In this document: one piece after another, positions 3,369-60,171 of the stretch
Layout of the letters: each line of letters opens with the position of its first letter
Position numbering within the stretch: position 1 is the first letter of the stretch
Origin: Mizuhopecten yessoensis
Taxonomy: Eukaryota
DNA length: 64,000 nt
Direction of reading: 5' to 3'
Assembly: GCF_002113885.1 (NCBI RefSeq)
Contig: NW_018408747.1
Coordinates: 59,655 to 123,654, forward strand
Program-made: the position numbers and the translations under genes
The notes under the pieces: model-generated
The model's database searches: none
Seen by the model: only the letters and a program-made list of their open reading frames with translations
Told to the model about the DNA's origin: nothing

Positions 3369-6300
3369 CATCATAGTTGTTATCTTAAGTTTAACTGAAT
3401 AACACTTTTCAATCTTCAAAATGATAGTTAATTGCTAAGTAATAAATGTCTCTTGGAGGTTGTGTAAAAACCTATTTTTAATAAACAAAATACAGATCTT
3501 GTAATTACAAAATTAGAAAAGTTTGTGTGATACAATATGCTTGGAGAAACCTCGGTTTAACGCCTATTGTTTTATCTGTCACTTCGCTTATTGCCAACAA
3601 ATTTCAAGGTTACAGTATCCATTTTTCTCAATAACATATGTATACGTTTCCTTCGCCTAACCTCTTTAAAATGACAATGTAAAACGATAATGTTGGATTT
3701 TACTATACATTTATAACCTCTTTATATATAACAGATACATGTCCTTATTTGGAGCAATCATGTAGTGCATACCATGTTGGTATAGGGGATGGGGGAATTC
3801 TACCAAATGGTGTATAATTTGGCTCAGAGCCAAGAGTTCGCCGACGTGCATAGCCTAATACTAGTAAACCCGAGAAAAAGGATTTCCCTGTTTTCCATAT
3901 CAAACATTATGATTGACTTTTTTCTCCCACTTTCTATCCGGGAATTACGTAAAAATCGACGATAACTTTGCGAATACTACAGTAACAAAGTAGATTTCAA
4001 GTTGACATACAAATTAAGTAAGAACACATTTGCTAACGTTTCACAGGACTTTGTTTTATTAATTGTTTATATCAGTGGGCTATATCAGATGACATCAATT
4101 AAATAATGTTACGTACACATTTGAATGATATCATGTTTCGGAAAGTCAGTCGATGAAATACTTAACATTTTAAACTCAAACAGTGTGTTTTCCACATGGG
4201 AAACGTATATCTTGCATACACAGACATGTGGAAAATATATGTATTGCATGACTGCCTGATTGATCTAAATCGTGACTAGGAAACGCATAAAAACAAACTG
4301 ATTCATTTAAACTGTTCAGTATCTGGTGTACCGACGTTTTGTAACCTGACGGTATCTTACTGTTTCAAATGACAACCGTCATTGTTTAATTGTCATTTTC
4401 ATCTGTGAAAAGATGTTTACCGCTAAAATACAGCGTATAACTGATATTGTCCCGCGGAAACAATACAATTATAAAACAATAGAACTGTCAAACTTTTCAA
4501 GCAGATGTTGTATTAGTAATGTACCATAAGTATACATTAATTTTCTGCTCTATTCTTATATGCGTTAAATATATTTGTTTTGTTACGTAGACCATTTATT
4601 ATAAACATTCTCAATGAAGATCGATTTTCACCTGAATCCCGGATTAACGGTCGGTTAAAAAGTCTCATATAGAAAAACAAACATTTTATCTTCGGTTGTA
4701 GGAATTCAGCCGAACAGTAAAGGATATCGCTATTGCCTAATTCACGAAAATCAAAATCAATACGAAATACTGTTTTTATTTAACTGAAGGAGAGATAATA
4801 AGACATATACATTGCCGTACATCGTACATTAAACACTGATATGGTTTTCACGAGCCATTTTTTTTTCTGCAGCAAAAAAACAAAAGAAGAAATAAAATAA
4901 AATGCGTATGCGGCGTTTAGGTCGAAATAAACACGATTATAAAAGAACACATAGTAAGTGTTGTATTTGACTTCTACATAACATCACAGCTCGACATATA
5001 TCTCTTTTCACTTTCGTCTTGGCCGAAGGTGATATCATTAAACAGGATATCACATTTAACTTAGGACCCATACAAACACAAAACACTCGTGCATTTCCTG
5101 TTTGACCAAGTGTGTATGTGTTAACATCTGATCTAGTAGCTCTATGATATAATTTCGATATCCTCCATTTCTGGCATGTATACCATAGGTCTAAAATTTA
5201 CTTTTTTTTAAATGAAGCATGACAATCCATCTTTACTGTGATCATAGGTGTATTGATAGAAAGCTTACTTACATTTTATGAACAATTTGACACAGAAAAC
5301 GCATACTTGTTAAAACAACATACTTATGGGACTGATAGTCTCCTTGTACATGTTGGATTCAGTGTTATGTATTGTTTTGTTAAATAATGGTCCTCATTTA
5401 AACATTCCCTAACAAACAGAAACCAGATTTTTCTTGTGAATTGTATAGTGTCTGAACATCCCACTACCGCTATATAACACATCCCAGAGCGGTATGTGGT
5501 TAATGAACAAACGAAAGCCGACAGGTGACATCACTCAGCATACCATTACAAGGAAACCTCCGTCCCCTATCATATAATAAAAATAATTTGAAATGCTCGA
5601 TAACTGGCAATTAAGATATTCCTCTATGCGACGACACACTGTCGTCGTATCAACCAGGCGATCGTAGTTTGCACAAAATACCTATTTGTTTGTTTATTAT
5701 ACTGCACTGTAGTGTGTATTTCTCTCTGTTATGGTAACATCGCATCACCGTTTCAAATTCCGATTTCCGCCCAAATCATGAGCATAATTCATGGTTACAA
5801 GAAATACATAAACTGAACCTAGGTATTCTTCCATGAACCCTTTTGTTGGGATGTTTGTTTTATTTTTCTATTTTGTTTTAAAAAGGTATTATAACTAAGT
5901 CACTGCTATGTCAAAACAATGTTCTTACACATACAGCTCTAACGTCACCAGTGACCAAGCTGGCAGAATGTCAGCGTAACTGTCTGGGTAAGAATATTGT
6001 TTTTGCACACATAAAAACGTTACTGGTTTAATATAATGGAGAGTAGCTTAATATATAGAGTGTCAGTCACCTTAAACAATGTATAAGAGTTCGACTTCAT
6101 TGTACTGACAAACCATGTAATAGACTGTTTAATCCCCTGACCCGTCAGTTGTGTACTAGCCATCTACATGTCTAAGGCGTTTTATATAGCCAGCGTTGGT
6201 CACAATGTAATCCATCAGCAAAAATGTCCTTTGTTGTGTTTTTTAATTGTAACGGAATATCTTTATGAGGAACATTTGTCATTTGTATGGCACTGAGGAT

Positions 6301-6773
6301 GAATCCTAAGTTATTACCTCAGTTTTAACCTATGCTCCATAAATTAATACCATTTTCAACGGATCTGATGTCATTCATCAAATACATAAACAGTAAGCAA
6401 GGTAAACCTATGCACTACGATTTCGTACTGTGCTTCCTTGGAGCACATGTGTATGTAAATGAGTTTCTTCCCTTCAATCAGAGATGAAACAGGTAACACG
6501 ATGGAGAGTCCATTAATGTCATTCTAGTTCTCTTAGGAAATCATTTGAATTGACATGCTTAATACTTGATTTTTGGCTATTGATATTTGAATGTACGATC
6601 AGAAATATTTCTTATATTGGCAGATGAATTGTTGTACTTCGTCAGTTCATATATTTTTATGTGTAACATGAACATGCAAAATGAACAATAAAGATTAAAT
6701 GAAGTGCATTATTCAATTTTTAATAATTTGGCATCATTTACATGTAATGCAAGGTTAACAGGATCAGCTGGAT

Positions 6774-8871
6774 CTAATATCCTGAAAAATAAATAAAGCA
6801 TATTAGTTGAACTTAACAGTTAAAATATATAATCGAAACAATTGTCACAAGAAGTTTGAGGTCAGAAAGTACTCATTTAAACATTAAGCAAGGGAATGTA
6901 AAAAGTCACAAGAAAAGTAAATATTTACTGGCTATTTTGTCAATTAAGAACACATCAGCGATACTAAACGTCAAACGTCTTAACGTTACATTTACAACAA
7001 TTAAAGGTACATTTGTAGTGTTTCCTGAAAACCGTCACAGAACGTATAATAAGGTCATATTCAAACTGTTAAAGGATTTGAACTGATGAGATTTGTTGTT
7101 AAGATATTTTCTTTTTGGAATTACAAGCTTGTTTATTGAGCGATACACATGTAGTTTCTCGTGCAGTTTTCAATTTAAAATAAAGAACAAGAATTAAAAG
7201 GATTTTTTCTTTTTTCTCCATATACCTTTTCCTCCGAATCCGCCTTTTCCTCCGAATCCGCCTTGGCCTCCCATTCCACTGCCAATTCCTCCGAAACCAC
7301 CATTTCCTCCGCCCATTCCTCCGAATCCACTTTTTCCGCCTGCCTTTCCTCCGAATCCGCCTTTTCCTCCGAATCCGCCTTTTCCTCCGAATCCGCCTTG
7401 GCCTCCCATTCCACTGCCAATTCCTCCGAAACCCCCATTTCCTCCGCCCATACCTCCGAACGCACTTTGTCCTCCCATTCCACCGTTCATTCCTCCGAAT
7501 CCACTTTTTCCGCCTGCCTTTCCTCCAAATCCCCCTTGTCCTCCCATATCACCGCCCATTCCTCCGAACCCACCATTTCCTCCGCCCATACCTCCGAACC
7601 CACTTTGTCCTCCCATTCCACCGCCCATTCCCCTGCCCATTCCACTGCCCATTCCTCCAAATCCACCGTTTCCTCCACCCATACCTCCGGATCCGCCTCC
7701 GTTCATGCCACCTCCCATTCCTCCTCCAGTACCGCCCATTCCTCCGAATACACCTTTTCCGCCTGCCTTTCTTCCGAATCCACCTTGTCCTCCCATTCCA
7801 CTGCCCATTCCTCCGAATCCACCGTTTCCTCCACCCATACCTCCGGATCCGCCTCCGTTCATGCCACCTCCCATTCCTCCTCCAGTACCGCCCATGCTTC
7901 CGAATCCACCACCATATCCTATAACACAGAGGGAAATGTTTTATTCATTTTTTAATCCAAACCATATAAGTATGTCAATTGTATTTCTTTTTACATATTT
8001 CTGTAAAGTGAATTGGACAATGCTTTACCAAATACCTGTGTTCAAATTAATATTTATGTAAAATACATGTATTTTCATTTTTGTTATTTTACTAGTTGCC
8101 TCCTAATGATAAACAAAAATTTATGTAAAAAAAACATATATTGAGATGTCCGAAAACGTGTGTAGGGATGTACCGCACACCGGCGTTTAAAATGATGACC
8201 ATCGCCTTACACTCCTTGAACGAGTATGACTGGATTTAAAGTGTTATTTCTATATTGCGTATTATTATATATTTTCTGTCCCTTTTCCGGCCCTGATACC
8301 GTATCTAGTTTTGATTCCTTTACGGACAACTTGGTTTTGATGTTGCCTCCGTAGTTAAGATGACGTAATTAACAGGGCAACACTAGTGGAATGTCCATTA
8401 CTTTGTATATTGTGGAATAAGAATAAGAATGATGGACTAAGAAAGCTCTAATCTGAATATCAAGTCAGTTTACGTATAACGCCAAACAGTGTTATAATTG
8501 TATTGAGACATATATTTTTTTCCGTCCATTTAGGACGCATACGTAGTACAAAAGGTCACAAGAATTAAACATTTATGTTTTAAACATTACGAAAAAGATA
8601 TTGACATAAAGGGAGAGGCGCTTATAAAATCTTTCACAACATGATAAATTAAAACATTTTGCTACAGCATATAATTTATCATCGAGAAATATATTAATGT
8701 AAAAATTGAAATGTCACAAATTATATTTCGTGTTCAGAAAGTAGCAGGGATAATTATTGAAATGATTTGGAAAGATGTACAGAGACACCTATTCGACATA
8801 ATTCTTTAAGACATACCAGCAGCTGAGACAGCAGCAACAAGGCAAACGGCAAGACAGATGTAGGTATTCAT
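6774..8871 (-). CDS. Abductin-like Gly/Met-rich secreted elastomeric protein (gene A, 251 aa)
   Basis: Coding exons 8871-8817 (signal peptide MNTYICLAVCLVAAVSAA), 7918-7226 (GYGGGFGSMGGTGG..., GGFGGM repeats) and 6781-6774 (GY*). All introns are GT-AG, phase 1; total 756 nt. N-terminus and KGY end match known scallop abductins as recalled (MNAYICLAACLIAAVSAAGYGGGAGSMGG...GGKGY). Probable non-coding exon ~9742-9686. Confidence 0.92.
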
Positions 8872-9765
8872 CCTGAGGATCTGTAGACAGACATGTGTAG
8901 ACAAATAATTATAAAGGCATTACATTTATTAAACATGTTGATATTTTGTATACTAAACTTCTTAACGAGCCTTTAAACTCATGTATTTATAGAACCTGTA
9001 ACAGTTTGTAGCTACTGCATGTTCTGATAACAGGGATATATCGAAATACTTGATACCCTGAAGTTATGTCGGGAAAGAATTCATAGTTTTCTTTCCACAG
9101 CTAGTAAATATAAGACAACGTTATGCATTTTAAATTGCGATAAATTCACATGATACATTTTAACTTTACATAATAATGTTTAACTTCACATGGTCAATTT
9201 TGAGCTACTGTAGCTAGCATTGTCTATCGCACCAAAGTTGTGATGTAGAGACCATAGCGTTATTCTTATGTATTTCACTACGTACAAAATACTCACAAGC
9301 AGGAGCTAAACGGAATCAATTATGAAGATACTTTAAGATATGTTAATAAGGATGCTTTGGCACATTTCTGATAGTGTTGATTATGACGTTTGTGTGTCAT
9401 CCCTCAAACATTAAGTATATTAATTAGAGAGTAATATATTTCTTTATTATAAAAGAGGTTTAAAACACCAATCTGAGAAATTACAAGCAATTGCCACCTT
9501 GATATTATGAGACTCAAACAGATTAAAAGACGAAGGCTTTATAGTACAACAGACAAACGTGTACCAAAACGTCAGCACATACGACAAATCCGGAACTGTT
9601 AGTCGACACAAATCGGCAATAAGATAATCCCAAAATACACTCCAAAAAGCACACAAAACGAGGTATTCTGAAATGTAAGTCGTACCTTGAAAAACAGGCT
9701 AGGAAATCTGCTGATGTCGGAGGGTAGAAAGGAGATGTGGTGATTTGTAACCTGAGGATAGCCAC

Positions 9766-11468: not shown

Positions 11469-12104
11469 AAGACCCTAATCTATCTTCCTCTGCACCACCT
11501 CTCCAGTCCTCCACCAGTATCTTCTAGCCAAGTCCGGTACGTTTTATATTAAATTGATTATGCTATTTTTTTTTATACATTAGACCTAATTATCATTAAA
11601 AAAATATTGTAATTATAATTAAATGAATTCAAGTTCGTTGTGAAATATCTTGATAATCATTTAAAGAATTATTGATTGCTTTTGTTTATATTCATACATT
11701 GCTTCATTGTCACTATACAATTTATTTTTGAGATATAACAAGAAGCTTTCCGAACAGAAAATTCATATATAAGGTATTCTTTAGATGTGTTTAACTGTTG
11801 AAAGCTAAATAAAATTGGATTCGGTATATATACTTAGTATCTAAGGGTAGGCAGAAAAATGGAATAGAAATTATTTTTCGGAACACTTATTCTTTAACTA
11901 AACGATTTATATGAAATTAGATGATTTGATTAGCTAAACCTTGTTAGTTCAAATGATTGTCGGAACAAAAGACACAAGTAGCATGTTCATCCTGTTAACA
12001 GTTTAACTTTTCGATTGNTGTCGGAACAAAAGACACAAGTAACATGTTCATCTTGTTAACAGTTTAACTTTTCGATTGTAAGGTATTCCTTTCAGAACGC
12101 AAAA

Positions 12105-13901
12105 ATGAACACCTATATATGTATGTGTTTGGCTTCATGCCTCTTGGTCGCTGTAAGCGCTGCAGGTAAGAATCATTTTACAAAATAATCAATTTTTGAT
12201 ATTATGTATGAAATATAATAAAAGCTGAATTTTGAAATAAAAAAATAAATTAAAGTATAAACTAGTAGACTTCCAACAGATTAAGATAGTAATACCTTTA
12301 TTTACATTGATTCTGTAATCATGAATTATCAATATGATTTTACAAATTTTAATGTATTTAAAAAAGCTTTGTACTTTTTGAAAATTTAGAAAAGCAAAAT
12401 GAAATAATAGTATGAAACAGGAGACTTCCATNCTTTGTACTTTTTGAAAATTTAGAAAAGCAAAATGAAATAATAGTATGAAACAGGAGACTTTCATAAA
12501 TTTAAAAATATCAATACCTTTATTTACATTGATTTTATAATAATGCATTATCAATATAACATTCCATAATTAAAATAGGTTTGTAAGTTCAGTTTGAAGC
12601 TTTTGTAATCATCATTTTATGGTATGACTTGACAATCTTTGGAATGGCGCATATTAATAATGAACAATAAATTATTTCATTAAAGATATATTTACTGTAA
12701 TCAAATGCTAATGTGATTTACGCAATATCTATTACTGACAGGATATGGAAATGGATTCGGAAACGGAAATGGTAACGGAAATGGCGGCGGAAATGGTAAC
12801 GGCAATGGCGCCGGAAAAGGATACGACAATGGCGCCGGAAACGGTTACGGCAATGGCGCCGGAAACGGATACGGCAATGGCGCCGGAAACGGATACGGTA
12901 ATGGCGCCAGTAACGGCGGTGGACGTAAGTTTTTATTTAATAAATTATCATATAAAACGAACAGAAAGTGATTCTGATAAATGATTTCAAGATTTATCAA
13001 ATAAACTACACTGAAAATAAATATCTTAAATAATTTGAGTGGATCACACTGTAAACTGTTGGTTTCTTAACCAATATATTTTTATGATAAGGATTTGTTG
13101 ATAATCTGTTTCAATATACACTGACTGGTGGGTCAGCCTATACACAAAGTAATACAATTTGCTGTTATAAAAACACATGTTGAAATATCTATGTTTAAAA
13201 TTTTTGATATTGTGTACTTTTTATTTCAGGTTACAGGAGAGCTGGTAAGTTTTCAACGTTTTTCATGCCTGATATTTTCAATTGGAGGTAGTTAAATATG
13301 AAGAGATATGTGATGAAAATTAGATTTTATAAAATAAAATGCAGAATAATCATTTTTATAACAGGAATATCAAATAATAAAGTGATGTTATCCGACATAA
13401 TGGTTTTTATAAGGTTACGGAGGTGGTGCCGGCTCTATGGGCGGAAGTTTCGGTGGCTCCGGAATGGGAGGCAACGGTGGATTCGGAGGAATGAATGGAG
13501 GCGGATTCGGAGGTATGAACGGAGGTGGATCCGGAGTAATGGGCGGTGGAATAGGAGGCAAAGGCGGATTCGGAGGAATGAACGGAGGCGGATTCGGAGG
13601 AATGGGCGGTGGAATGGGAGGCCAAAGTGGACTCGGAGGAATAAACGGAGGCGGATTCGGAGGAATGGGCGGTGGAATGGGAGGCCAAAGTGGATTCGGA
13701 GGAATGAACGGAGGCGGATTCGGAGGAATGGACGGTGGAATGGGAGGAGGAAAAGGTAATAATGAACATGTTTGATATATCTCAAACGAAGAAAAAAATC
13801 AGATACATGTATGTCGCTTTTAAAATATTTATTAATAACCGTATCATGTGCATTGTATTGATTATTAACCGAACTTCCTTTTTTCTCTTTCAGGTTACTA
13901 G
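12105..13901 (+). CDS. Abductin-family two-domain precursor (gene B, 202 aa): signal, Gly/Asn/Tyr repeats, RYRR, Gly/Met abductin domain
   Basis: Exons 12105-12165 ([20 protein letters not shown]), 12742-12924 (GYGNGFGNG...(GNGAGNGY)n...GGG), 13230-13244 (RYRRA), 13414-13755 (GYGGGAGSMGG...GGK) and 13894-13901 (GY*). All introns GT-AG, phase 1; 609 nt open frame; AATAAA at ~13936 and ~13952. Confidence 0.88.
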
Positions 13902-16900
13902 ATGACTTGCCTGTTCGTTAAATCTTACAGTTTATAATAAAATGGATTTAAAATAAAATATTCGGAGAGAAAACATTTGTTGCTTGTATATGTTAATGTC
14001 CTTTTAAAATGGTTAGGTTCCTATTGCTATTTGATAACTTATAATAACAAATGGTGAAAGACAGAGAACAAACTTGTAAATGCCATAACAATCAGATGCT
14101 TGTAAAAGTGATATATTAAGATTTAACAGCATCACAAACATTGATATTAGTTTGTCAATTGATTCAAACTCATATTGATGTTTGTATCAACATATCGAAA
14201 CTGAAATATTTCCCGGTATCGTGTTACACTTTCTTGTCACTTCCTACCTTTGACCGTAACCTTGCAGCATCAGACCTCTCATATCTCAGATATTCCATAT
14301 CTACACTTGTAACTTCAGCTTACAATATGATTTGTATCCCTCAAAACATCATACCGTGTTACTGAAATACCAAATTATATAAGATGACAACTTGTTTGCC
14401 TATAGTGCATTTGTCTATTTTAAATTTTATTGCAGTGTAATTAACTTTTGGCATAATGTACCGTATATATTACCAGGAGATAATGGAGCAATCACTTGTG
14501 TGTACAAATTGTAATGTTCTCCTCGATTCCTGTTCCCATATCATAGAAAAGTGTGATAACAGTTTTGATAATCAGTCGTTTCCATTAGAGACATATTTTC
14601 AAATGGCAAATACAAACACCTTTGTAGCTAACACTGTCAAGTACTTGTGATAGTAAGAAACCTGTCTCTGTGAGTGCATTGTGGTTATCTGACGTCCTTG
14701 ACAGCACTTTCCAAGAAAAAAAGTTAAACAAAAGTAGTTCAATGAACTATAAATTATTCATATTTGGACATAATGATATACAAATGATAACCTTGTCGTA
14801 TATAATATTATATAATAATGCCATTACAAATTTAAACGGCTTTTATTTCTTTGCTAGGTAACAGATGTTAACAATCACGTGATAAAACATCTTGTCTACA
14901 TTCGTGTTGATGTGCTATTTCTCTATTCAGGAAATCTTAATGATGATTGAAATCAACAAGATCGCGGCGTTATTGTAAAATCTCTTGTACATAATGTCTA
15001 TGTTCATTTGGCTTTCTGCTCGCTCAAGGCTGTTCTTGGGAAAAGGTAAATTTCCAACTTTTGAGTGGGAATTGAAAGTAAAATAAAATGGAATGGGTAG
15101 ATATTTGTCAATATCACTCATGTATCTAGAATATCCTGTAACTTGAAAATTTTCTGAAAGTGTGAATCAACTTGATATAATTTAGGTGGAAGTTGTTATA
15201 TTACTTCAAATGAATAACACATAAAGTCGATACTTCTCAAAGAAATAGTACAAAACGGTATTAACTAATTTCCAAACTGTTGTTGTTGTGTGTTTTTGAC
15301 TGTAATTGTTCATTGTTTCCCTCTACAATTTAAAACCAACATACTACTGTAGCTTTACACAAGTTCATATCTGTTGACACCTTGGCAGTAATTATCACTT
15401 CACCACAAAATTCTATTACTTACAAAAATGGTCGTTACGTTTTCTTCCCTCAAAATAATATTAGATATAACAGGTATATTGAAGCTATATAATATAGACT
15501 TTCCTTTGTACTTGTGTATCAGCTGTTCTGGTCTAGTATCTTGTTTCAGTGTGCTTACGCCGTTATGTAAGTCTCTTTTTCATGTATAGAACAACCAAAT
15601 GCTTTGTACAAATATGGCTTGAATTTATACACTGTTGAACGGTTAACTTGCATTCCATATAGTTGGCAGGTAACACTGTAATATAGATTGAGCTTATAAA
15701 AAGTTGTGTCGGTGTAATGGTTAAGAATATATGTAAATCTACGACATATAGGGCTACTACAGAAAAATAGCGACCATGTTGAACCCTTGAGCTATATTTT
15801 GATGTTTCTTTTACATACTATGTTAAATGAGTTATTTTGTCCCCGAACTTACGTTGTATACCTTATTCTGATATGGATAGCTAGAGATAAATTTCAAATA
15901 TATGAGAGTCCTGAAACTGCTTTTTTCGACGAACTGTTGAAATCATAGGCAAATGTTTGAAATTTCCCTACATTTTCTCCTCANTGAACCCTTGAGCTAT
16001 ATTTTGATGTTTCTTTTACATACTATGTTAAATGAGTTATTTTGTCCCCGAACTTACGTTGTATACCTTATTCTGATATGGATAGCTAGAGATAAATTTC
16101 AAATATATGAGAGTCCTGAAACTGCTTTTTTCGACGTACTGATGAAATCATAGGCAAATGTTTGAAATTTCCCTACATTTTCTCCTCGACCGGCGTTAGT
16201 GTTTTGAGATTACTGATTATAACTATTCCTTTGATTTACCGTTCTCTATAAAACACCTTTTATCAAAACACATAACCATAACGAAATTTACATTACTGAC
16301 ATCTCTTGTCTATAAAAAAATCCTTCTCAGCCATTTTCAGTCTTTCCTAGTTTTCCAGGACTTCTTTCCAGATCATGATGCTACATCCATTATTTCTGTA
16401 AATAACCATCGCCGACATAAACAAATATGCCATTATCTATAAAAAGACTAAACATATACTGCCATTTCCCTTCACTAACAAAAGTCTTTTGACCAAACTC
16501 AGTCTCAGAGAAGCAGCGATAACCTTCAATTCAACCGTTTTAATATAATATTCACATAGTTTTGAATAAAATGATCCTCGTTTACTTTGTCAGTTTTACT
16601 GTTCCCCATAAACACAAACAATTAATCATCTGGATTAGTAAAGCAATGACTATATAGTTGAATCGTAAGGGTAGAAGTTATTTTATGTTGTAAATACTGT
16701 GTGAATAGAAAAAAACAACTCATCAACACGTATGTAGTTAATATAATTCATCACGTGACTTCTGTTGTCTTTGCTAGTGCTTACAAATACGGCATGTGAT
16801 GAATAAGCACTCATCGTGTCTAGCCGTTCAGTCCGTCGTTCTTCTAATAACTGGACTATTTAGGCTAAATTGGTGTTTGTTTTGAATAGAAAAAAATAAC

Positions 16901-19419: not shown

Positions 19420-20150
19420 AAAATTTGATATTAGTAGAATAACACAATTGCGACATCTCAACGAAGTGAATTGGAGTAGAAATACACTAAATCGACATCT
19501 CAGGCGATTTGATAGGAGTAGAGTTACACTATTGCGACATCTCAGGGAATTTGATAGGTGTAGAAATACACTATATTGACATCTCAGGTGATTTGATAGT
19601 TAGTAGAATAACAATATACGAGTAGAAATACACTAGTGTAATATCTATGGTAATTTAATAGGAGTAGATTTACACTATTGCGACATCTCAGGGGATTTGA
19701 TAGATGTAAAATAACAATATACGAGTAGAAATACACTAGCGTAATATCTCAGAAGTAAATAGGAGTAGAAATACACTATTGCGACATCTCATGTGATTTG
19801 ATACTAGTGTAGGAGTAGAATTACACTATATCGACATCGCAGGTGATTTTATAGTAGCAGAATTACACTATATCGACATCTCAGGTGATTTGGTAGAAGT
19901 AGAATTACACTATATCGACATCTCATGTGATTTGATAGGAGTAGAATAACAATAAACGAGTAGAAATACACTAGTGTAATATGTTAGGGAATTGGACAGG
20001 AGTAGAAATACATTATTGCGACATCTCAGGTGATTTAATAGGGGTAGACTAACTCTGTTGCGACATCTCATGTGATTTGATAGGAGTAGAGTTACACTGT
20101 TGCGACATCTCAGGTGATTTGATAGGAGTAGAATTACACTATTGCGACGT
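19420..20150. repeat. 42-bp minisatellite (unit 1)
   Basis: Unit ttgataggagtagaattacactattgcgacatctcaggtgat, about 17 degenerate copies; gives 14-aa periodic ORFs. Confidence 0.9.
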
Positions 20151-23444: not shown

Positions 23445-24739
23445 TGTTAACGTATGCCGAACTATTAATTCATTTGCAATTGACAACAAAAGAGGATCTA
23501 CAAATATACTTTTATTTACAATATACAATATCTTTATAAGCATACTCTTTCACACTCACTAATAACTCTCATATAATTCTACATTGGACATATATATTAT
23601 GATTTACTTACATCTATAAATAGATAAATATATATATTATATTACACCTAAATCCCTAAATCTATAATATAATGAATAGTCGTTGTAGCTTCCCACACGA
23701 ACAGATCACAAAGTTCCGTTAATGTTAATTTCAATCCCGTTTTCTGGCAAACACAATCAGTAGCCAAACACTCTTGGAATGTCCTCCTGGTCAACTGGCA
23801 GATGACATCTATGGCTGAACTGTATCTCAGCTGCTGAAGTCACAGTTGCTGTGTCGGAGTTCAACTCCACTCAACTATTACCGGGCCTCCATACCAGAGT
23901 ATGTCACATCATGCTCCCAGCCTCCATAATAGAGTACTATGTCTCCATAACTAGGGAAAATTTCATCACGTTCCCTCCCCCTTGGATAATCATATCCATA
24001 TGTATAAGTCAGTTCATAAAACTGCTGTCTCAGTGCATCGTAGGTGGAAAACATGGACAATAACACCGTCGGCCATTACGGGTTTCCATACTTTTGTCCT
24101 CAGACAAAACTGACAGGTCTCTCACTGGGAAATAAGCTACAAAATATAAATAACACTAGTAACTACATAATTGTACACTATCATGTTACATATCTATAAT
24201 ATACGCTTTAAACATATTACTTATACAACATTCTGCAACATGCGTAAACACACCACGTCGCNTGCCATTGTGACTTTGTTTATTATAAATAAATAAGCCC
24301 CAATGATCCTTATTCAATATCTAAACAACTACCACACAAACCCATTCGCTCTCACTGCACTCCGTACAATTTCGCACCTGTTTACTATTTGAGAAATACC
24401 GTTTATTACACGGTCAAACATACACAGAATCAACAATATAACTCAGGAGATACACACAGATCTATCGATGATTAAAATATAACTTACCGTGAGCTGTATT
24501 TCACGCTAACTCCCGAATACTTCACAATAACAGAAGCAGTAATGAAAACAATGGTCACGCCATTACACCTGCCTTTCACACCTGTCCAAACAACTCTGCG
24601 CGTGCCCAGGTAAGTATAAAGTTGGCGCGCTTTTCTTTACCCGCGAAATACAAATACCAATAACCTACCTTTCCTATTTAATTCTCACTCATACTTACCG
24701 CATGGAATATAAAGTAACCTCAAATGTCGATATGTGACA
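23445..24739 (-). repeat. 3' LTR
   Basis: Near-identical direct repeat of 28713-30050; reads TGTCAC...GTTAACA on the minus strand; an 'n' gap at 24262 coincides with ~70 missing bases. Confidence 0.92.
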
Positions 24740-27700
24740 CACGTCCCAATTTAGAAAAATTCATGTTGGAACAAATTGTATTTTTACAATACACATATGA
24801 CATTTTGCTCCTCACATTATATATCCTGGACTATGTACATATTGTCCTGCATGTATGCATATCTACAGTCTGCTGAGGCAGTCTGCCCCCACGTTGTCCT
24901 TGCCTCTGATGGCACAAATCGTAAAACGATATGGCTGTATCTGCAATGCCCATCGCATCAGTCTAGCGTTGTTGCCCTTCATCTTGTTGAGATAGATGAA
25001 CGGCTGATGATCAGTTTCTAGGATAAACTGCCTTCCATAAATGTACTTCTGGAATTTAGTGATTCCCCATACAACAGCTAAACATTCCTACTCGACCACA
25101 GCATAGGATTTCTCAGCATCTTTCAGCTTTTGGCTAGCATAGGCAACGGGAAATAGACTGTCAACAGCTTCCTGTAGAAGAACGGCCCCAAGACCGTAGT
25201 CTGACGCATAAGTCTGTAGTACAAACTCCTTCTCAATATCAGGTAGTTTCAGTATTGGACTGGATGATAACATTTTCTTTAAAGTTTGGAACGCTCTTTC
25301 TTGAGGTTCCAACCACTTAACTCGATTAGGTTGTCCTTTTCTAGTGAGATCAGTTAATGGCACTGATATCGAAGCAAAGTCCGGTATGAACTTCCTGTAG
25401 AAGCCTGCCATTCCCATAAATGATCGCACTTGCTTCTTCATCTCTGGTGTCTGAACATCCAGAATAGCTTTGATCTTGTCAGGATTTGGTGCAAGACGCT
25501 GGTCACCGACGATATGACCAAGACTTTCCAGACTTCCATACCCTATGGCACACTTTGTAGGTCTGGCTGTAAGACCTGCACTTCGAAGCCTCTGGAATAG
25601 CGTCTTCAAGATGAACAAATGTTCTTCCAACGTCCTGGTGTACACAAGAATATTATCTATAAAGCTCTCGATCCCAGTCATGTCTTTCAGAAGTTTCCTC
25701 ATCATACGACAAAATGTTGCTGGCACATTCACAAGTCCAAAAGGCATCACAGAAAATTCGAACAATCCTTTAGTGGTTGAAAAAGCTGTCTTTTGTTGAG
25801 CTGTCTTCGCCATAGGCACTTGCCAATAGCCTTAACTTAGATCCAATCGAGAGAAGTATCGATACCTGATAGGCGTGCAAATATCTCATCCGCATTCGGC
25901 ATTGGCTCTGCATCGAAGATGGTAACTCGATTCAGCTGTCGATAGTCAATACAAAACCTATTACTGCCATCTTTCTTTTTGACAATTACAACTGGAGCAG
26001 AGTAAGGTGACTCGGACGGCGTTATCACACCCACTTCCCCACTTCATCTTGGATTGTCGCCTTCATACTGTAGGGTATACTATGACTCTTAGCCCTGACT
26101 GGTTCATCTGTCAAAGAAGTTATGTCGAGTTCTCCAAGGTTGGTTTTTCCCGGAACATTTGTAAGGACGTCTTCAAATTCCTCTTACAATTCCTTGACAT
26201 CTGTCTTCTGTTCCACAGCGAGTAATTCTGATACCAGTACATCTTCAGTAGTTTCAGATCTTATTGGTCCTGGCGAGGTAACAATCGCGTCCTCGAGAAT
26301 CTCTTCGTTCTCATTGCTGTCTTCCTCCTCAATGACTGCAGCACAAGTGACTGACAGAACACCTGGATCATTTCTGACGACACAGTTACCATCCCTGTCA
26401 ACATATAGTCGCAATAGGTTTGCGTGGTAAGTCTTAGACTTTCCGTCGACTACAACTTTGTAGTCCATAGACCCCTTTCTCTCCTCAATTACATATGGTC
26501 CTATCCACTGCATTAACAACTTGTTCCTTTTTGTTGGCAGAAGCACCTTTCTGTCTTTCGCCTTCTTGTTATAGTACATTGCTTGACGAGTTCTGGCTGA
26601 CTTCAATTGCTGCTGAGCCATCTTGCATGTCTCTTCCAAACGCTCTTTCAGATCAATACCATATTGATAAGCGGTCTTTGTATCAGGATCAGGAATATCC
26701 TTGGTCAATAGTTCCCTGAGAATCATCATTGGGCCTCTAACCTATCGTCCGTATAACAACTCAAACGGAGAAATTCCAAGGCTCTCCTGCGTCACTTCAC
26801 GATAAGTAAACAACAAATCGTTGATATACTTGTCCCAATCACGAGGTCTTTTGGAACACATCCTACGAAGCATTTGCTTGAGAGTGCCATTAAATCGTTC
26901 AACAAGTCCATTGCACATCGGATGGTACGGCGTTGTAGTTAACTGACGAATAGACAACAAACGGCTGACTTCTCGCATCAAATCGGAAGTGAATTGTGAG
27001 CCCTTATCTGTCAGCACTTCTTGAGGAATTTCAACACGACTGTAGACATCAACTAAGGCCTCTGCAACTCGTTCAGTTTCAATGCTCTTCAATGGAACTG
27101 CTTCAGGATATCGCGTCGCATAATCGACTATGGTGAGTATGTAACGGTAACCTCTTTCAGTTACAGGATCCAATGGTCCAACTATGTCAATGGCTACACG
27201 TTGGAACGGAGTGTCCGTTGGCTAACACACATGTCTCCATTTCACTAGTAAGATACTCGTCTCCTACCAGGCATGTCTTGACAAAAGAACGCTCACAACC
27301 AGAGTCCCTCAAAACCGACACCGGATAAATACCAAAAAATCCCTGCACAACAGGCATTTCCGTATTGCATACTTGTCTTCGGCGTTTATTTTCCCCTTTT
27401 GATGACACACAGTTTGCCTGATTCTTTTTGTTTGTCTTCTGTGGACATCTGAAAGAAAGATGATCAGTTTTCTGGCAAATGTAACAATGTTTCACCAACC
27501 CTGTATTACTTTGTTTGTCCCTCGGTCCCGTCTCAGCAGAAGTCTTACCGAGTGTCCCTGAGGTTGACCACCACTGGATGATGACTTATGCCCTCCATAC
27601 CTTGGCCTTGCTAAACTGAATGCATCACCTCTTGCTTCAGCGTACTGATCAGCAAGTTTGGACATCTCTCCTATAGACTTTGGAATCCTCTCCTTCAGAA

Positions 27701-28696
27701 ACAAAGTAAGGTCGTTTCCACAAGCACGAATACATTGATCCCGAATCATCAAATCCTTGAGACCTGCAAAGGTTTTCTCAGTTCCCGCCATCTCTAGCCA
27801 TCGCTGGAAGTAACTCTCTAATCGGAAAGCAAATTGGCTAAAGGTTTCGCCTTTTTCCGGTCTTCCGTCTAGAAAACGCTTCCGGAAACCTTGCTCGGTC
27901 ATCTCGATCTCTTAAGGAGAGCACCCTTAAGTACATCGTAATCCATACTCTGGTCAAGAGGAAGTCTTGAAAATACATCTAAGGCTCTTCCTTTTAGAAG
28001 AACACTAAGGTTGGTTGCCCACTCTCTGTTCCTGTCCCAACCTTGCGTTGTCGCGTACCGCTCAAATCTTTGCAAATATGAGTCTATATTGTCCTTCCTT
28101 CCTCAAAAGAAGAAAGTTTAGGCCCCTTAACCACATGTGATGAATGAGGAGTTACTTGTGGTGATCCATCTCCTTGTTTGTTCTTCCTTTCTAGAAGCTG
28201 CATCTCTGTCGCTCATGCTCTCGTATAGCTCTGGCTTCTCTTTCCTTTTCTAAATCTGCCTGCATCTTCAACATGTTCAGCTCATGTTCCATTTCACCTT
28301 GGGCCTTTATCAAGTCTCTCTGCTTCTCTCTCTCATCACGTTCCCTGGCTTGCTCGTTGAGAATATAATCCTGAAGTTCTTTTCCTGACAATTCTAGTTC
28401 CCCTCCACGATCCTTCATTTCTCGAATGGAAGACATGATGAAACAATAGTGTAATATACAACGTACCACTATCCAGCGACTCAAATAGCAAACGTATGAT
28501 CATCTAATAATCAATATCTAAAACAAAATTTTAATTTGGAAATTTAAAGGACACTTACCTTTATAACAGCAGTATCCATGTGAACTAACACCTAGTCTAG
28601 TCTTTATATAGCTGAAAGAAAAACTAAAAAAAAGGACTCTCACAGATTCCCTCTCAGAGTATACAACACAAATCCTCATACAACTACAAACAAAAT

Positions 28697-28712
28697 AATC
28701 CCACCGCTGCCA
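28697..28712 (-). other. Primer-binding site complementary to the tRNA-Leu 3' end
   Basis: TGGCAGCGGTGGGATT immediately inside the 5' LTR; complement of ...AATCCCACCGCTGCCA, the 3' end of metazoan tRNA-Leu(AAG/TAG). Confidence 0.8.
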
Positions 28713-30050
28713 ATTCATTTGCAATTGACAACAAAAGAGGATCTACAAATATACATTTATTTACAATATACAGTATCTATACAAGCATACTCTTTCACAC
28801 TCACTAATAACTCTCATACAATTCTACATTGGACATATATATTATGATTTACTTACATCTATAAATAGATAAATATATATATTATATTACACCTAAATCC
28901 CTAAATCTATAATATAATGAATAGTCGTTGTAGCTTCCCACACGAACAGATCACAAAGTTCCGTTAATGTTAATTTCAATCCCATCTTCTGGCAAACACA
29001 ATCAGTAGCCAAACACTCTTGGAATGTCCTCCTGGTCAACTGGCAGATGACATCTATGGCTGAACTGTATCTCAGCTGCTGAAGTCACAGTTGCTGTGTC
29101 GGAGTTCAACTCCACTCAACTATTACCGGGCCTCCATACCACAGTATGTCACATCATGCTCCCAGCCTCCATAATAGAGTATTATGTCTCCATAACTAGG
29201 GAAAATATCATCACGGTCCATCTCTGGATAATCATATCCATATGTATAAGTCAGTTCATAAAACTGCTGTCTCAGTGCATCGTAGGTGGAAAACATGGAC
29301 AATAACACCGTCGGCCATTACGGGTTTCCATACTTTTGTCCTCAGACAAAACTGACAGGTCTCTCACTGGGAAATAAGCTACAAAATATGAATAACACTA
29401 GTAACTACATAATTGTCCACTATCATGTTACATATCTATAATATACGCTTTAAACATATTACTTATACAACATTTTGCAACATGCGTAAACACACCACGT
29501 CGCTCACTCATCTATGCTCAATCGTATATAGTAATGACCAGACTAACATTGATATATTATTGCATTTGTATAATGCCATTGTGACTTTGTTTATTACAAA
29601 TAAATAAGCCCCAATGATCCTTATTCAATATCTAAACAACTACCACACAAACCCATTCGCTCTCACTGCACTCCGTACAATTTCGCACCTGTTTACTATT
29701 TGAGAAATACCGTTTATTACACGGTCACACATACACAGAATCAACAATATAACTCAGGAGATACACACAGATCTATCGATGATTAAAATATAACTTACCG
29801 TGAGCTGTATTTCACGCTAACTCCCGAATACTTCACAATAACAGAAGCAGTAATGAAAACAATGGTCACGCCATTACACCTGCCTTTCACACCTGTCCAA
29901 ACAACTCTGCGCGTGCCCAGGTAAGTATAAAGTTGGCGCGCTTTTCTTTACCCGCGACATACAAATACCAATAACCTACCTTTCCTATTTAATTCTCACT
30001 CATACTTACCGCATGGAATATAAAGTAACCTCAAATGTCGATATGTGACA
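28713..30050 (-). repeat. 5' LTR
   Basis: Direct repeat of 23468-24739; lacks the last ~23 nt present in the other LTR. Confidence 0.92.
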
Positions 30051-32219: not shown

Positions 32220-33928
32220 ATGAACACCTATATATGTATGTGTTTGGCGTCATGCCTCTTGGTCGCTGTAAGCGCTGCAGGTAAGAATCATTTTACAAAA
32301 TGATCATTTTTTGATATTATGTATGAAATATAATAAAAGCTGAATTTTGAAATAAAAAAATAAATTAAAGTATAAACTAGTAGACTTCCAACAGATTAAG
32401 ATAGTAATACATTTATTTATATTGATTCTGTAATCATGAATTATCAATATGATTTTACAAATTTTAATGTATTTAAAAAAGCTTTGTACTTTTTGAAAAT
32501 TTAGAAAAGCAAAATGAAATAATAGTGTAAAACAGGAGACTTCCAAAAATTTAAAAATATCAATACCTTTATTTACATTGATTCTATAATAATGCATTAT
32601 CAATATAACATTCCATAATTAAAATAGCTTTGTAAGTTCAGTTTGAAGCTTTCGTAATCATCATTTTATGGTATGACTTGACAATCTTTGGAATGGCGCA
32701 TATCAATAATGAACAATAAATGATTTCATTAAGGTATATTTACATTAATCAAATGCTAATGCGATATACGCAATATCTATTACTGCCAGGATATGGAAAT
32801 GGATTCGGAAACGGAAATGGTAACGGAAATGGCGGCGGAAATGGATACGGCAATGGCGCCGGAAAAGGATACGGCAATGGCGCTGGAAACGGTTACGGCA
32901 ATGGCGCCGGAAACGGCTACGGCAATGGCGCCGGAAACGGATACGGCAATGGCGCCAGTAACGGCGGTGGACGTAAGTTTTTATTTAATGAATTATCATA
33001 TAAAACAAAGAGAAAGTAATTCTGATAACTGATTTCAAGATTTATCAAACAAACAACCAATATCTTTTCATGATAAGGTTTTGTTGATAATCTGTTGGAA
33101 TATACACTGGCTGGTGGGGCAGCCTATACACAAAGTAATACAATTTGCTGTTATAAAAACACATGTTGAAATATCTATGTTTAAAATTTTTGAAAACAAA
33201 TCGTTTATTGTGTACTTTTTATTTCAGGTTACAGGAGAGCTGGTAAGTTTTTAACGTTTTTCATGCCTGATATTTTCAATTGGAGGTAGTTAAATATGAA
33301 GAGATATGTGATGAAAATTAGATTTTATAAAATAAAATGCGGAATAATCATTTTTATAACAGGAATATCATATAATAAAAGTGATGTTATCCGACATAAT
33401 GGTTTTTTTCTAAGGTTACGGAGGTGGTGCCGGCTCTATGGGCGGAAGTTTCGGTGGCTCCGGAATGGGAGGCAACGGTGGATTCGGAGGAATGAATGGA
33501 GGCGGATATGGAGGTATGAACGGAGGTGGATCTGGAGGAATGGGCGGTGGAATGGGAGGCAAAGGTGGATTCGGAGGAATGAATGGAGGCGGATTCGGAG
33601 GTATGAATGGAGGCGGTTCCGGAGGAATGGGCGGTGGAATGGGAGGCAAAGGTGGATTCGGAGGAATGAATGGAGGCGGATTCGGAAGTATGAATGGAGG
33701 TGGATCCGGAGGAATGGGCGGTGGAATGGGAGGCCAAAGTGGATTCGGAGGAATGGGCGGTGGAATGGGAGGAGGAAAAGGTAATAATAAACATGTTTGA
33801 TACATCTAAAAGGAGGAAAAAATCAGATACATGTATATCGCTTTTAAAATATTAATAAATTAACCGTATCATGTGCATTGTATTGATTTTTAACCGAACA
33901 TCCTTTTTTTTCACTTTCAGGTTATTAG
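32220..33928 (+). CDS. Abductin-family two-domain precursor (gene C, 210 aa)
   Basis: Exons 32220-32280, 32790-32972, 33228-33242 (RYRRA micro-exon), 33415-33780 and 33921-33928. All introns GT-AG, phase 1; 633 nt open frame; ends GGKGY*. Confidence 0.88.
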
Positions 33929-36900
33929 AGGACTTGCCTGTTCGTTAAATCTTTCAGTTTATAATAAAATGGATTTAAAATAAAATAGTTGGAGAAAAAA
34001 CATTTGTTGCTTGTATATGTTAATGTCAATTTAAAATGGTTAGGTTCCTATTGCTATTTGATAACTTAACAAATGGTGAAAGACAGAACAAACTTGTAAA
34101 TACCATAACAATCAGATGCTTGTTAAAGTGATGTGTTAATATTTAACAGCATCATAAACATTGAAATTAATTTGTCAATTGATTCAAACTCATATTGATG
34201 TTTGTATCAACATATCGAAACTGAATTAATTCGCACTTTCCTACAAAAAAACTTAACTTTATGTGTATTTTTGTAATTGCCATTATGTTGAAATATGGAT
34301 GCAATTAAAAAAAACTGTTTTAACTTCAATTGATATTAATTTATAATAATAATAATGATAATAATTTGAGGTTCTTATATACCGCTTTATTAAAATAAAA
34401 CAAGAAATATGAAGAACGAAGCATTCCTTAAAAATAATATATTGATGCAGGAAGTGAAAGAAGTAAAATTTTACTGTACACAATGAATATTTCATGAATA
34501 TAGGACTCATCAGTGGGGCTAAAGGTCAAACGAATACATATATAAATCTAAGGTGCGCCAACAATTATGTCCCAACCACATTGTGTCATGAAATAATTAC
34601 AAGAAACGATTAAGGATCAGATTATACATACAGTCAGAATAACGTTCTACAGCCATGAAGCAACACTTCTTGTTGGCGTCAATTATTGACCTAAGGTAGA
34701 CAGTGGGTACGTTATAGAAGGTACCATCACTTGTGTGTCTGTTACCTTCCTATTTCAAGATACAAGATGGTAGACTCTGCTGGTGGATTGCATGGTTCCT
34801 TCGGATCACCGTAACCTTGCTTCCATCGACCTCTCATGTCTCAGATATTCCATATCTACACTCATACCGTGTTAATGAAACACCAAATTAAATAAGATGA
34901 CAATTGCCTATAGTGCATTTGTCTATTGTTGATTTTGTTGCATTGTAATTAACTTTTGGCATAATGTACATATTACCAAATGTTAAAGAAGCAATCACTT
35001 GTGTGTACAAATTGTAATGTTCTCCTCGCTTCCTTTTCCTATATCATAGACAAATGTGATAACAGTTTTGATAATCAGTCGTTTCAATTAGAGACATATT
35101 TTTAAATGGCAAATACAAACACCTGTGTAGCTAACACTGTCAAGTACTTGTAATAGTAAGGAACCTGTATCTGTAAGTGTCTTGTGGTTATTTGACGTCT
35201 TTGAAAGCACCTTCCAAGAAAAAAGTAACAAAAGTAGTTCAACGAACTATAAAGTATTCATATTTAGACATAATGATGTACAAATGATACTATGGTCGTA
35301 TATAATATTATATAATAATGCCATTACAAATGTAAACGGCTTTTATTTCTTTGCTAGGAAACAGATATTAACAATCACGTGATAAAACATCGTGTCTACA
35401 TTTGTGCCGTTGTGTTATTTCTCTATTCAGGAAATCTTAATGATGATTGAAATCAACAAGATCGCGGCGTTATTGTAAAATGTCTGGTAAATATTGTCTA
35501 TGTTCATTTAACTTTCTGCTCGCTCAGTGCTGTTCCTGGGAAAAGGTAAATTTCCAACTTTTGAGTGGAAATTGAAAGTAAAATATAATGGAATGGGTAG
35601 ATATTTGTCAATATCACTCATGTATCTAGAAAACCCTGATACTTCAAAATGTTCTGTTAAAGGAATAACATATAAAGTCGATACTTCTCAAAGAAATAGT
35701 ACAAAACGGTATTAACTACTTTCCAAACCATTGTTGTTGTTTGTTTTTGACTGTATGTGTTCATTGTTTCCCTCTACAATTTAAAACCAACACACTACTG
35801 TAGCTTTACATGTTTATATCTGTTGACACCTTTCCAGTAATTACTACATCACCACAAAATTATATTTCTTACAAACATGGTCGTTACGTTTTCATCTCTC
35901 AAAATAATAGTAGATATAACAGGTATATTGAAGCTATATACTATAGACTTTTCTGTGTACTTGTGTGTCAGCTGTTCTGGTCTAGTATCTTGTTTCAGTG
36001 TGATAACGCCGTTATGTAAGTCTCTTGTTCATGTATAGAACACGTAATCTAAACAACCAAATGCTTTGTACAAATATGGCTTGGATTTATACACTGTTGA
36101 ACGGTTAACTTGCATTCCATATAGTTGGCAGGTAACACTGTAATATAGACTGAGCTTATAAAAAGTTGTGTCGGTGTAATGGTTAAAAATATATGTAAAT
36201 CTACGACATATAGGGCTACTACAGAAAAATAGCGACCATGTTGAACCCTTGAGCTATATTTTGATGTTTCTTTTACATTCTATGTTAAATGAGTTATTTT
36301 GTCCCCGAACTTACGTTGTATTCCTTATTCTGATATGGATAGCTAGAGATAAATTTCAAATATATGAGAGTCTTGAAAAACTTTTTTTTTTCGGCGTACT
36401 GTTGTCAAAGGCAAATGTTTGAATTTTCCCTACATTTTCTCCTCGACCGGCGTTAGTGTTTTGAGATTACTGATTATAACTATTCCTTTGATTTACCATT
36501 CTCTGTAAAACACTGGCCTTTATTCAAAACACATAACCATAACGAAATTTACGTTACTGCCATCTCTTGTCTTGAAAAATTCCTTCTCAGCCATTTTCTG
36601 TCTTTCCTAGGTGTCCAGGACTTCTTTCCAGATCATGATGTTACATCCATTATTTCTGTAAATAACCATCACCAACATAAACAAATATGCCATTATCTAT
36701 AAACAGACTAGACATATACTGCCATTTCCCTTCACTAACAAAAGTCTTTTGACCAAACTCAGTCTCAGAGAAGCGGCGATAACCTTCAATTCAACAGTTT
36801 TCATAAACCATTCATATAGTTTTGAATAAAATGATCCTCGTTTACTTTGTCAGTTTTACTGTTCCCCATAAACGCAAACAATTAATCATCTGGATTAGTA

Positions 36901-39040: not shown

Positions 39041-39810
39041 GGTTTATCATATACTTAGTACAATATTCTGCATATCAGCCCTGTGTAACATGGTTAAATT
39101 CACGTGACCCATATCAGACCGGCGGTCAGGAATAGCATATCACGACTTTCGGAACTCTTCAAGTTCGAAACAACTCTAGAGTTAAAAGTACATCAGACTA
39201 CCACTGCTTTGTTTACATAAGATATGACGGTCACTTATGATTACAGGTCAAGAAAGGTGACAGAATTCTAAATTCACCTACAAATCGGATACCGGATCTT
39301 GATGACATTATTTACAAAGAAAATCTTTCTGGAGACAGAGCAGAAAATCAACAATCTTTTGCAGCTACTCAACAAATGCGAACTCAATAACTTCGCGATC
39401 ATCACAAGAAATAGTGGAATTTGATACAGAGTGAAATAGAGCAGTTTTCTGAATGACGAGACTTTTACATTATTGCACAAAAAGAAAACTCATGCCCGTC
39501 ACACAGCTAACAGGATTCCCAGCTAGTATGTGTTCTGGTACCATAATCGATGGAAATGTGGTATTTAATTATGGAAATACCTGCAACAGGAAAAGAGTAC
39601 GCGTCATTTACAGGACTCTGATTCCGATTTAACTGTCATGGTTGAACAATATGATAAATTGAATATTACATAGTAAACTCCATATCACATGGCATATCAG
39701 CCCTAGACTATTACAGACTTCGGGCTAAAGCCCTCGGTTTGATATTGGGTCCTCGGACTGATATGGCATATGATATGGTTTTAACCATGTAATATTCTCT
39801 GTTTATCAGA
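39041..39810. mobile_element. Putative non-autonomous DNA element splitting the 42-bp minisatellite (right end also at ~19330-19410)
   Basis: Interrupts minisatellite units. Internal inverted motifs catatcagccc/ggactgatatg and aacatggttaaa/tttaaccatgt. Confidence 0.4.
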
Positions 39811-39814
39811 AAAT

Positions 39815-40530
39815 TTGATATTAGTAGAATAACACAATTGCGACATCTCAACGAATTGAATAGGAGTAGAAATACACTGAATCGAACTCCCAGGCGATTT
39901 GATAGGAGTAGAGTTACACTATTGCAACATCTCAGGGGATTTGATAGGAGTAGAAATACACTATATCGACATCTCAGGAGATTTGATAGTTAGTAAAATA
40001 ACAATATACGAGTAGAAATACACTAGTGTAATATCTATGGTCATTTAATAGGAGTAGATTTACATTATTGCGATACTCAGGGGATTTGATAGGAGTAGAG
40101 TTACACTATTGCAACATCTCAGGGGATTTGACAGGAGTAGAAATACACTATATCGACATCTCAGGGGATTTGATAGTAAAATAACAATATACGAGTAGAA
40201 ATACACTAGTGTAATATCTAAAGTAATATAATAGGAGTAGAATTACACTATATCGACAGCTTAGGCAATTTGATAGGAGTAGAATTACACTATTGGGACA
40301 TCTCAGGGAATTTGATAGGTGTAAAATAACAATGTACGAGTAGAAATACACTAGTGTAATATGTTAGTGCATTGGATAGGAGTAGAAATACACTATTGCG
40401 ACATCTCAGGTGATTTAATAGGGGTAGAATTACTCTGTTGCGAAATCTCATTGGTTTGATAGGAGTAGAATTACACTGTTGCGACATCTCAGGTGATTTG
40501 ATAGGAGTAGAATTACACTATTGCGACGTT
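39815..40530. repeat. 42-bp minisatellite (unit 2)
   Basis: Same unit as 19420-20150. Confidence 0.9.
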
Positions 40531-60140: not shown

Positions 60141-60171
60141 GAAGAAAATATTTAGAAAAATTAAGATAAGT

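Follow-up and report, generated by a model that had tools for sequence, protein, structure and literature searches.

Abductin is a protein of the inner hinge ligament, expressed by the part of the mantle that secretes this ligament. It is the textbook example of a compressive protein rubber, and biomaterials copy it as a single chain of 117 amino acids; its assembly is unknown (PMC9999432). As the work of Cao, Wang & Bayley (1997) is summarised in that article, abductin of Argopecten irradians has a precursor of 136 amino acids, a signal peptide of about 19 residues, Gly/Met repeats of the type GGFGGMGGGX and a mature chain of about 116-117 amino acids. The Tyr residues sit at the chain extremities, and Tyr-based links have been proposed for its cross-links, which are also unknown (PMC9999432). 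We analyzed a stretch of 64,000 nucleotides from the scallop Mizuhopecten yessoensis (contig NW_018408747.1, positions 59,655 to 123,654 of the forward strand), which is called the window here. At 12105-13901 on its plus strand lies an abductin fusion gene, and the sequence strongly supports that its product is a secreted precursor of two modules, joined by an R-Y-R-R linker from a retained 15-nt exon. As in Argopecten, the abductin module has 117 amino acids and the exon-skipped form of the gene would have 136, and the signal peptide, the Gly/Met repeats and the Tyr residues near both ends are shared. Unlike Argopecten abductin, the module in the window is preceded by a Gly/Asn/Tyr-rich module of 64 amino acids and by the micro-exon linker RYRR.

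Polyprotein precursors that are cleaved at dibasic sites are already known, molluscan matrix proteins included. Pif of Pinctada fucata is cleaved at RMKR into Pif97 and Pif80, and both Pif and BMSP of Mytilus are shell-matrix precursors that are cut at a dibasic site into two matrix proteins (PMC11291548). The fusion gene resembles them in that a secreted molluscan matrix precursor contains one internal R-X-K/R-R site between unlike modules, and two cooperating products are predicted from one mRNA. However, it has no sequence or domain relationship to Pif, which has VWA and chitin-binding domains. Its modules are short, of low complexity and disordered, the site is placed on its own micro-exon, the product is an elastomer and not nacre, and cleavage has been shown for Pif but is predicted here. 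Neuropeptide and prohormone polyproteins also have modules separated by dibasic sites, with the C-terminal basic residues trimmed after the action of a proprotein convertase and a carboxypeptidase. In comparison, the products of the fusion gene would be structural, there are two modules only, and the amidation signal (Gly before the basic pair) is absent. An abductin precursor with an Asn-rich partner and a protease-site micro-exon in two ligament subfamilies seems to be undescribed in the literature searched.

The model of the fusion gene (copy 1) was read directly from positions 11900-14100 of the window and then checked for frame with a script. It has five exons on the plus strand, the introns are all GT-AG and in phase 1, and the coding sequence of 609 nt translates into 202 amino acids without an internal stop. 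Exon 1 (12105-12165, 61 nt, donor CAG|gtaaga) includes the start codon and encodes a signal peptide of about 19 residues with a predicted cut at VSA|A; the last base of the exon opens a split Gly codon. Judged by rule only, the core of the peptide is hydrophobic, and the residues at -3 (Val) and -1 (Ala) fit the -3/-1 rule of signal peptidase. Exon 2 (12742-12924, 183 nt) encodes the Gly/Asn/Tyr-rich module, with a 24-nt repeat unit (GNGAGNGY) as its building block; its product starts with GY and ends with GGG, followed by C as the first base of an Arg codon. The intron of 489 nt between exons 2 and 4 holds the micro-exon GTTACAGGAGAGCTG (13230-13244, acceptor ttatttcag, donor gtaagt). Together with the flanking split codons the micro-exon gives R-Y-R-R-A-(G), the first Arg codon being divided into C from exon 2 and GT from the micro-exon. 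An intron of 169 nt then precedes exon 4 (13414-13755, 342 nt), which has a weak acceptor (tataag) and encodes the abductin module, starting with GYGGGAGSMGG and carrying Gly/Met repeats of the GGFGGM type. The terminal coding exon GTTACTAG (13894-13901, 8 nt) adds (G)Y and the stop. In the script translation the junction reads ASNGGG-RYRR-AGYGGGAGSMGGSF, with AGYGGGAGSM as the abductin start, and all three Arg residues of the protein fall inside the four-residue RYRR stretch.

The product of exon 4 has the traits of abductin. Its 117 amino acids include 71 Gly, 13 Met, 8 Phe and no Pro, and the decapeptide-type Gly/Met repeats (GGFGGMGGGX), a Gly content of about 58-60% with very low Pro, and the N-terminal secretion signal of about 19 residues in copy 1 are all found. 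The module starts with AGY and ends with KGY, which places Tyr near both extremities. At the DNA level, exon 4 contains tandem repeats with periods of 24 and 63 nt and is 70-74% identical to the exon of a canonical abductin gene in the same window. The latter gene lies on the minus strand at 6774-8871 (exons 8871-8817, 7918-7226 and 6781-6774) and encodes 251 amino acids, running from VSA|AGYGGGFGSMGG to GGKGY-stop. Its N-terminus AGYGGG is the one predicted for the C-terminal product of the fusion, and this match, proposed in a first-pass annotation of the DNA, holds in that the gene at 8871-6774 reads VSA|AGYGGG.

Three further copies of the fusion gene or its upstream part are present in the window. 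Copy 2 (32220-33928, plus strand; exons 32220-32280, 32790-32972, 33228-33242, 33415-33780 and 33921-33928) is a tandem copy that encodes 210 amino acids with the same RYRR junction. The other statements of the first-pass annotation about the two genes also stood. The 27-nt string tttcag|GTTACAGGAGAGCTG|gtaagt, which holds the micro-exon at 13230-13244 and its second copy at 33228-33242, occurs exactly twice in the window (13224-13250 and 33222-33248), compared to none expected in shuffles; both copies translate to GGG-RYRR followed by the abductin start; and both predicted products begin with AGY, with Tyr as the third residue, and finish with a C-terminal Tyr, which belongs to the GGGRY end in the Gly/Asn product. 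Copy 3 (45356-46593, plus strand; exons 45356-45416, 45926-46156 and 46586-46593) is a stand-alone Gly/Asn gene of 99 amino acids, with a predicted mature form of AGYGNG...NGGGRY-stop. It differs by an indel block of about 553 bp (13213-13766, plus strand), present in copies 1 and 2, that consists of exactly the micro-exon with its acceptor, the following intron of 169 nt, and the abductin exon with its donor. Because this block is absent from copy 3, its Gly/Asn exon joins the terminal exon and the protein ends with NGGGRY-stop. The resulting C-terminus GGGRY is that predicted for the trimmed N-terminal product of the fusion. Copy 4 (57695-58450, plus strand) is a diverged pseudogene, 71-89% identical to the other copies, and is composed of a signal exon (57695-57755), a Gly/Asn exon (58092-58246) with a frameshift and a stop, and a terminal exon (58443-58450). 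It retains a relic, GAAAAGGGTAATGATAAAC, that matches the 3' end and the donor of the abductin exon, a hint that the fused arrangement is older than the duplications at this locus. As to the assembly of this region, there are single N positions in the window at 12018 and 12432, as well as at 15984, 24262 and 31684. N positions are flanked by near-exact direct repeats of 61 nt (11958-12079) and 66 nt (12367-12497), and copy 1 has a 66-nt insertion at 12432 relative to copies 2 and 3. These repeats look like gap-closure duplications of the assembly.

We scored the splice sites with a crude generic position weight matrix. The micro-exon obtained 9.4 for its acceptor and 10.7 for its donor, compared to 7.9 and 7.1 for exon 2, and 0.7 and 6.0 for exon 4. 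It was the sole strong, in-frame and stop-free candidate of the 489-nt intron. On both strands of the window (128 kb), the two micro-exons were the only places where an equally strong acceptor and donor occurred within 60 nt, and the chance expectation of such a pair is 0.0013-0.0036 per 489-nt intron. The 15-nt stretch is very probably a real coding exon. The possible origin of the micro-exon was addressed by local alignment of this exon and the adjoining sequence to three targets: the region of the terminal exon, the first exon and intron of the fusion gene itself, and the first intron of canonical abductin. An origin as a relic of the signal-peptide or terminal exon was unsupported, since the alignments were no better than those of shuffles (z from -0.4 to 2.2).

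A sister subfamily was found elsewhere in the genome. The whole assembly (987.6 Mb in 82,659 contigs) was searched with the canonical abductin exon, the matches were scanned and the genes on contig C704 were read. Three genes there, at 5855-9160 (L072), about 20.6-23k (L073) and 33940-36865 (L074), consist of five exons with all junctions in phase 1, as in the fusion genes of the window, and have an Asn-rich exon and then a Met/Gly-rich exon, with a 12-nt micro-exon between them. Their signal exon (MNAYLFVSMASAIVVATNAA) is 61 nt long. Exon A encodes the Asn-rich module GYGMMNN(GYGMNN)n...GG followed by a C, exon B starts with AAYGMGGGMGGG, and the terminal exon of 14 nt encodes GGRY-stop. The micro-exon and its splice sites read ttatttctag|GTTACAAGCGTG|gtaagtag, and the junction is NNGG-RYKR-AAYGMGGG. 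Two of the genes have intact reading frames (C704a with 220 and C704c with 120 amino acids); C704b has an exon B that is disrupted at its 3' end, and RYKR is present in all three. Both modules of these genes end with G-R-Y, encoded as GGA C|GT TAC, split by the intron, at the internal site and as GGA AGA TAC at the terminal one. The Met/Gly-rich proteins contain GMGGGMGGMPGMGMGG repeats and about 29% Met. In Pinctada fucata, the ligament proteins (LMP and others) have been described as Met-rich, of low complexity, insoluble and without acidic regions (PMC7591529). The C704 subfamily resembles them in composition, and PMC7591529 describes no processing site or micro-exon for LMP, in contrast to these genes.

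The introns of the window genes and of the C704 genes give no alignment, and what the two subfamilies have in common is exon-level similarity of low complexity. Despite the unalignable introns, the core TTATTTC(T)AG|GTTACA...|GTAAGT is kept in both. The Arg at P4 is also kept, P2 is R or K, and the Arg at P1 is encoded by AGA in one and CGT in the other, i.e., with two synonymous differences. The exon boundary is shifted by one codon: one subfamily has the Ala codon in its micro-exon, the other has it at the beginning of exon B, and the peptide R-Y-[K/R]-R-A is the same. Such a pattern is the mark of selection for the basic residues that the exon encodes. A pattern search with the C704 micro-exon returned exactly three matches on C704 and a single-mismatch copy at position 8720 of the window's contig (C5420). 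The latter belongs to a decayed gene on the minus strand at about 7.6-10.2k (L075), where the 3' half of the Asn-rich exon is missing together with its donor, and AT stands in place of GT at the donor of the micro-exon; the splice from the signal exon to exon B is still in frame. The Asn-rich module and the linker were lost together in this copy, which would be expected if the linker serves only to join the modules, although this is a single case. A pattern match on contig C1185 (L046), reading (x)YKR, lies in a satellite array and was rejected as chance.

It may be argued that splicing always passes over the 15-nt stretch, which would make it a pseudo-exon, or that the fusion genes are silent. 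Inclusion of the micro-exon and expression of the genes are predicted from sequence, and the cluster does have decayed members (copy 4, C704b and the 8.7k copy on C5420). Copies 1 and 2 are recent duplicates, 94-98% identical in the neighboring introns as well, and the identity of their micro-exons therefore carries no weight as evidence of constraint. However, no more than 0.004 such splice-site pairs are expected by chance in an intron, and the pair, together with the basic residues, is found again in the C704 genes, whose introns cannot be aligned with those of the window genes. The fusion reading frames of copies 1 and 2, C704a and C704c are also uninterrupted. We consider this explanation very improbable, and a pseudo-exon that was never used is unlikely on these grounds.

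R-X-K/R-R is the established consensus of furin and related proprotein convertases. The genome contains nine matches to the proprotein-convertase P-domain (PF01483), all above the Pfam cut-off of 21 bits and five of them at 72-86 bits. A signal-peptide exon is found in every family member, and entry into the secretory pathway is predicted. The precursor of copy 1 would thus be laid out as a signal peptide, the 64-residue Gly/Asn/Tyr-rich module, R-Y-R-R and the 117-residue abductin module. In the proposed processing, a furin-type convertase in the secretory pathway of ligament-secreting mantle cells would cut after RYRR, and a carboxypeptidase would then trim the two C-terminal Arg residues. 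The products, in equal amounts, would be a Gly/Asn peptide of 64 amino acids (AGY...GGGRY) and an abductin of 117 amino acids (AGYGGG...GKGY) that starts with AGYGGGAGSMGG. Both would have the termini that the stand-alone paralogues encode, and a Tyr near each end would be available for cross-linking. The Met/Gly-rich subfamily shows a like design, with a signal peptide, the GYGMNN module, RYKR and AAYGMGGG...GGRY. If the micro-exon is included, cleavage at the linker is fairly likely in our judgment, and for the reading as a whole, i.e., a precursor that is cut into two ligament peptides, the balance tips slightly in favor. The polyprotein interpretation of the first-pass annotation is supported in part: all of its statements about the sequence stood, and we infer from them the inclusion of the micro-exon in mRNA, the cleavage by a convertase and the 1:1 delivery to the ligament.

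Several points speak against this interpretation. The first-pass annotation had looked to the orthologues for conservation of RxRR. The motif survives as RYKR in diverged paralogues, but these are from the same genome, so that the comparative support comes from two independent lineages of paralogues and not from orthologues. Within the literature searched, where only reviews were met, there was nothing on an abductin fusion or on the gene structure, splice forms or processing of abductin. HMMER-based searches of protein databases with the abductin exon gave no match at E<=0.001 or at E<=10; this is attributed to the composition correction on a query with 60% Gly and is not taken as evidence of absence. 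The basic, Tyr-containing linker, though conserved, could also serve another role while remaining uncut. In that case the micro-exon would be spliced in and the product would be a two-block protein, in which R-Y-[K/R]-R acts as a charged and aromatic sticker or as a site of Tyr cross-linking. This would suit the Tyr inside the motif, which is invariant in both subfamilies, and the proposals of Tyr-based links for abductin, whose cross-links are unknown (PMC9999432), and cleavage itself is a prediction from sequence. However, the motif is an optimal convertase consensus in both lineages (P1, P2 and P4 are basic) in proteins that are otherwise almost free of Arg. The residues after it form the N-terminus that follows a signal peptide (A-G/A-Y-G), and those before it form the C-terminus of the stand-alone and terminal modules (G-R-Y). 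Such matching termini are explained by cutting and not by a sticker role, and we regard an uncut linker as possible but rather doubtful.

Alternative splicing should also be weighed against the cut precursor. The internal exons are all in phase 1-1, a point absent from the first-pass annotation, so all products of skipping are open and separate peptides could be made without proteolysis; the micro-exon might then be a minor or regulated cassette. Skipping the micro-exon gives 197 amino acids with the in-frame junction GGG-RY-GGG, skipping exon 2 and the micro-exon gives the canonical abductin form of 136 amino acids in frame, and skipping the micro-exon and exon 4 leaves 83 amino acids in frame, i.e., the signal peptide and the Gly/Asn module. 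The weak acceptor of exon 4 (score 0.7) and the classical abductin length of the 136-residue form are in line with this view. The sizes published for Argopecten are matched by both the released 117 and the exon-skipped 136 amino acids, and this counts for the cut precursor too. On the other hand, a linker exon would be pointless if only separate isoforms mattered, and this one persisted in two old subfamilies, with its splice sites still strong, and decayed when the upstream module was lost. Cassette splicing as the explanation appears to us a little less likely than an uncut linker, but it is compatible with a cut precursor and both splicing and processing could operate.

A more general scheme can be put forward tentatively, although we think it is more probably wrong than right in its full form. 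An old modular system of linker micro-exons (12-15 nt, R-Y-[K/R]-R) might couple an Asn-rich module to an elastomer module, either abductin or its Met/Gly-rich relative. Cleavage and trimming would then yield peptides in stoichiometric pairs, whose uniform ends (A-G/A-Y-G ... G-R/K-(G)-Y) would serve for cross-linking through Tyr from end to end, and native abductin rubber would be a two-component material. The canonical single-module genes would be derivatives without the upstream module, comparable to the 8.7k copy on C5420. If the precursors of the ligament matrix do release, in addition, a Gly/Asn/Tyr peptide in equimolar amount whose Tyr-bearing ends match, ideas on the composition of the hinge and the topology of its cross-links, and perhaps on its mineral interface, would have to be revised; recombinant mimics of abductin would then lack one component. 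The locus would also be a clean example of a micro-exon whose sole content is a predicted protease site. Natural controls exist in the same genome, as the stand-alone modules and the copy with joint decay of module and linker.

The window covers part of a large cluster of abductin-family genes that extends from about 7.6k to 187k of contig C5420. Canonical abductin genes on the minus strand are located at about 16.3k, 37.3k, 49.9k and 66.9k, and diverged Gly-rich members (Ser-rich, Pro/Phe-containing and Met-rich) at about 123.8k, 134.1k and 187.3k; plus-strand genes of the Gly/Asn type are interspersed among them. In the member at 123.8k (L023), the signal exon lies about 355 nt upstream of the main exon, without an upstream module or micro-exon. 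For the Gly-rich members L024 and L035, a signal exon of the family type or a micro-exon was not found within the 3-kb loci.

Gly/Tyr-rich matches on contig C4270 (L013, L014) were rejected as unrelated matrix-like genes. They comprise a pair of Gly/Tyr/Lys-rich exons (GYGKGYGHGKGYG...) at 417080-417138 (L014) and 440483-440548 (L013), followed by a Pro/Met-rich stretch and GGFGGFGG, and are probably another pair of secreted matrix-type genes, unrelated to the fusion genes. Within the window, a long terminal repeat retrotransposon occupies 23467-29503 on the minus strand. Its direct repeats (23467-24261 and 28712-29503) are 97.6% identical, and its open reading frames at 25088-27902 give gag-like, integrase-like and reverse-transcriptase-like translations. 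There are two satellite-like arrays, one with about 30 copies of a 36-nt unit at 60159-61287 and one with a 42-nt unit at 19423-20148, which appears again at 39806-40527 within a segmental duplication of about 20 kb. Two related open reading frames on the plus strand, at 52280-52654 (124 amino acids, MIKAKIRGVLPIDVRSGHPLGK...) and 61691-62104 (137 amino acids, MKAKIRGLLHYDVRSGHPLGK...), could derive from a duplicated gene, as exons or fragments of it.

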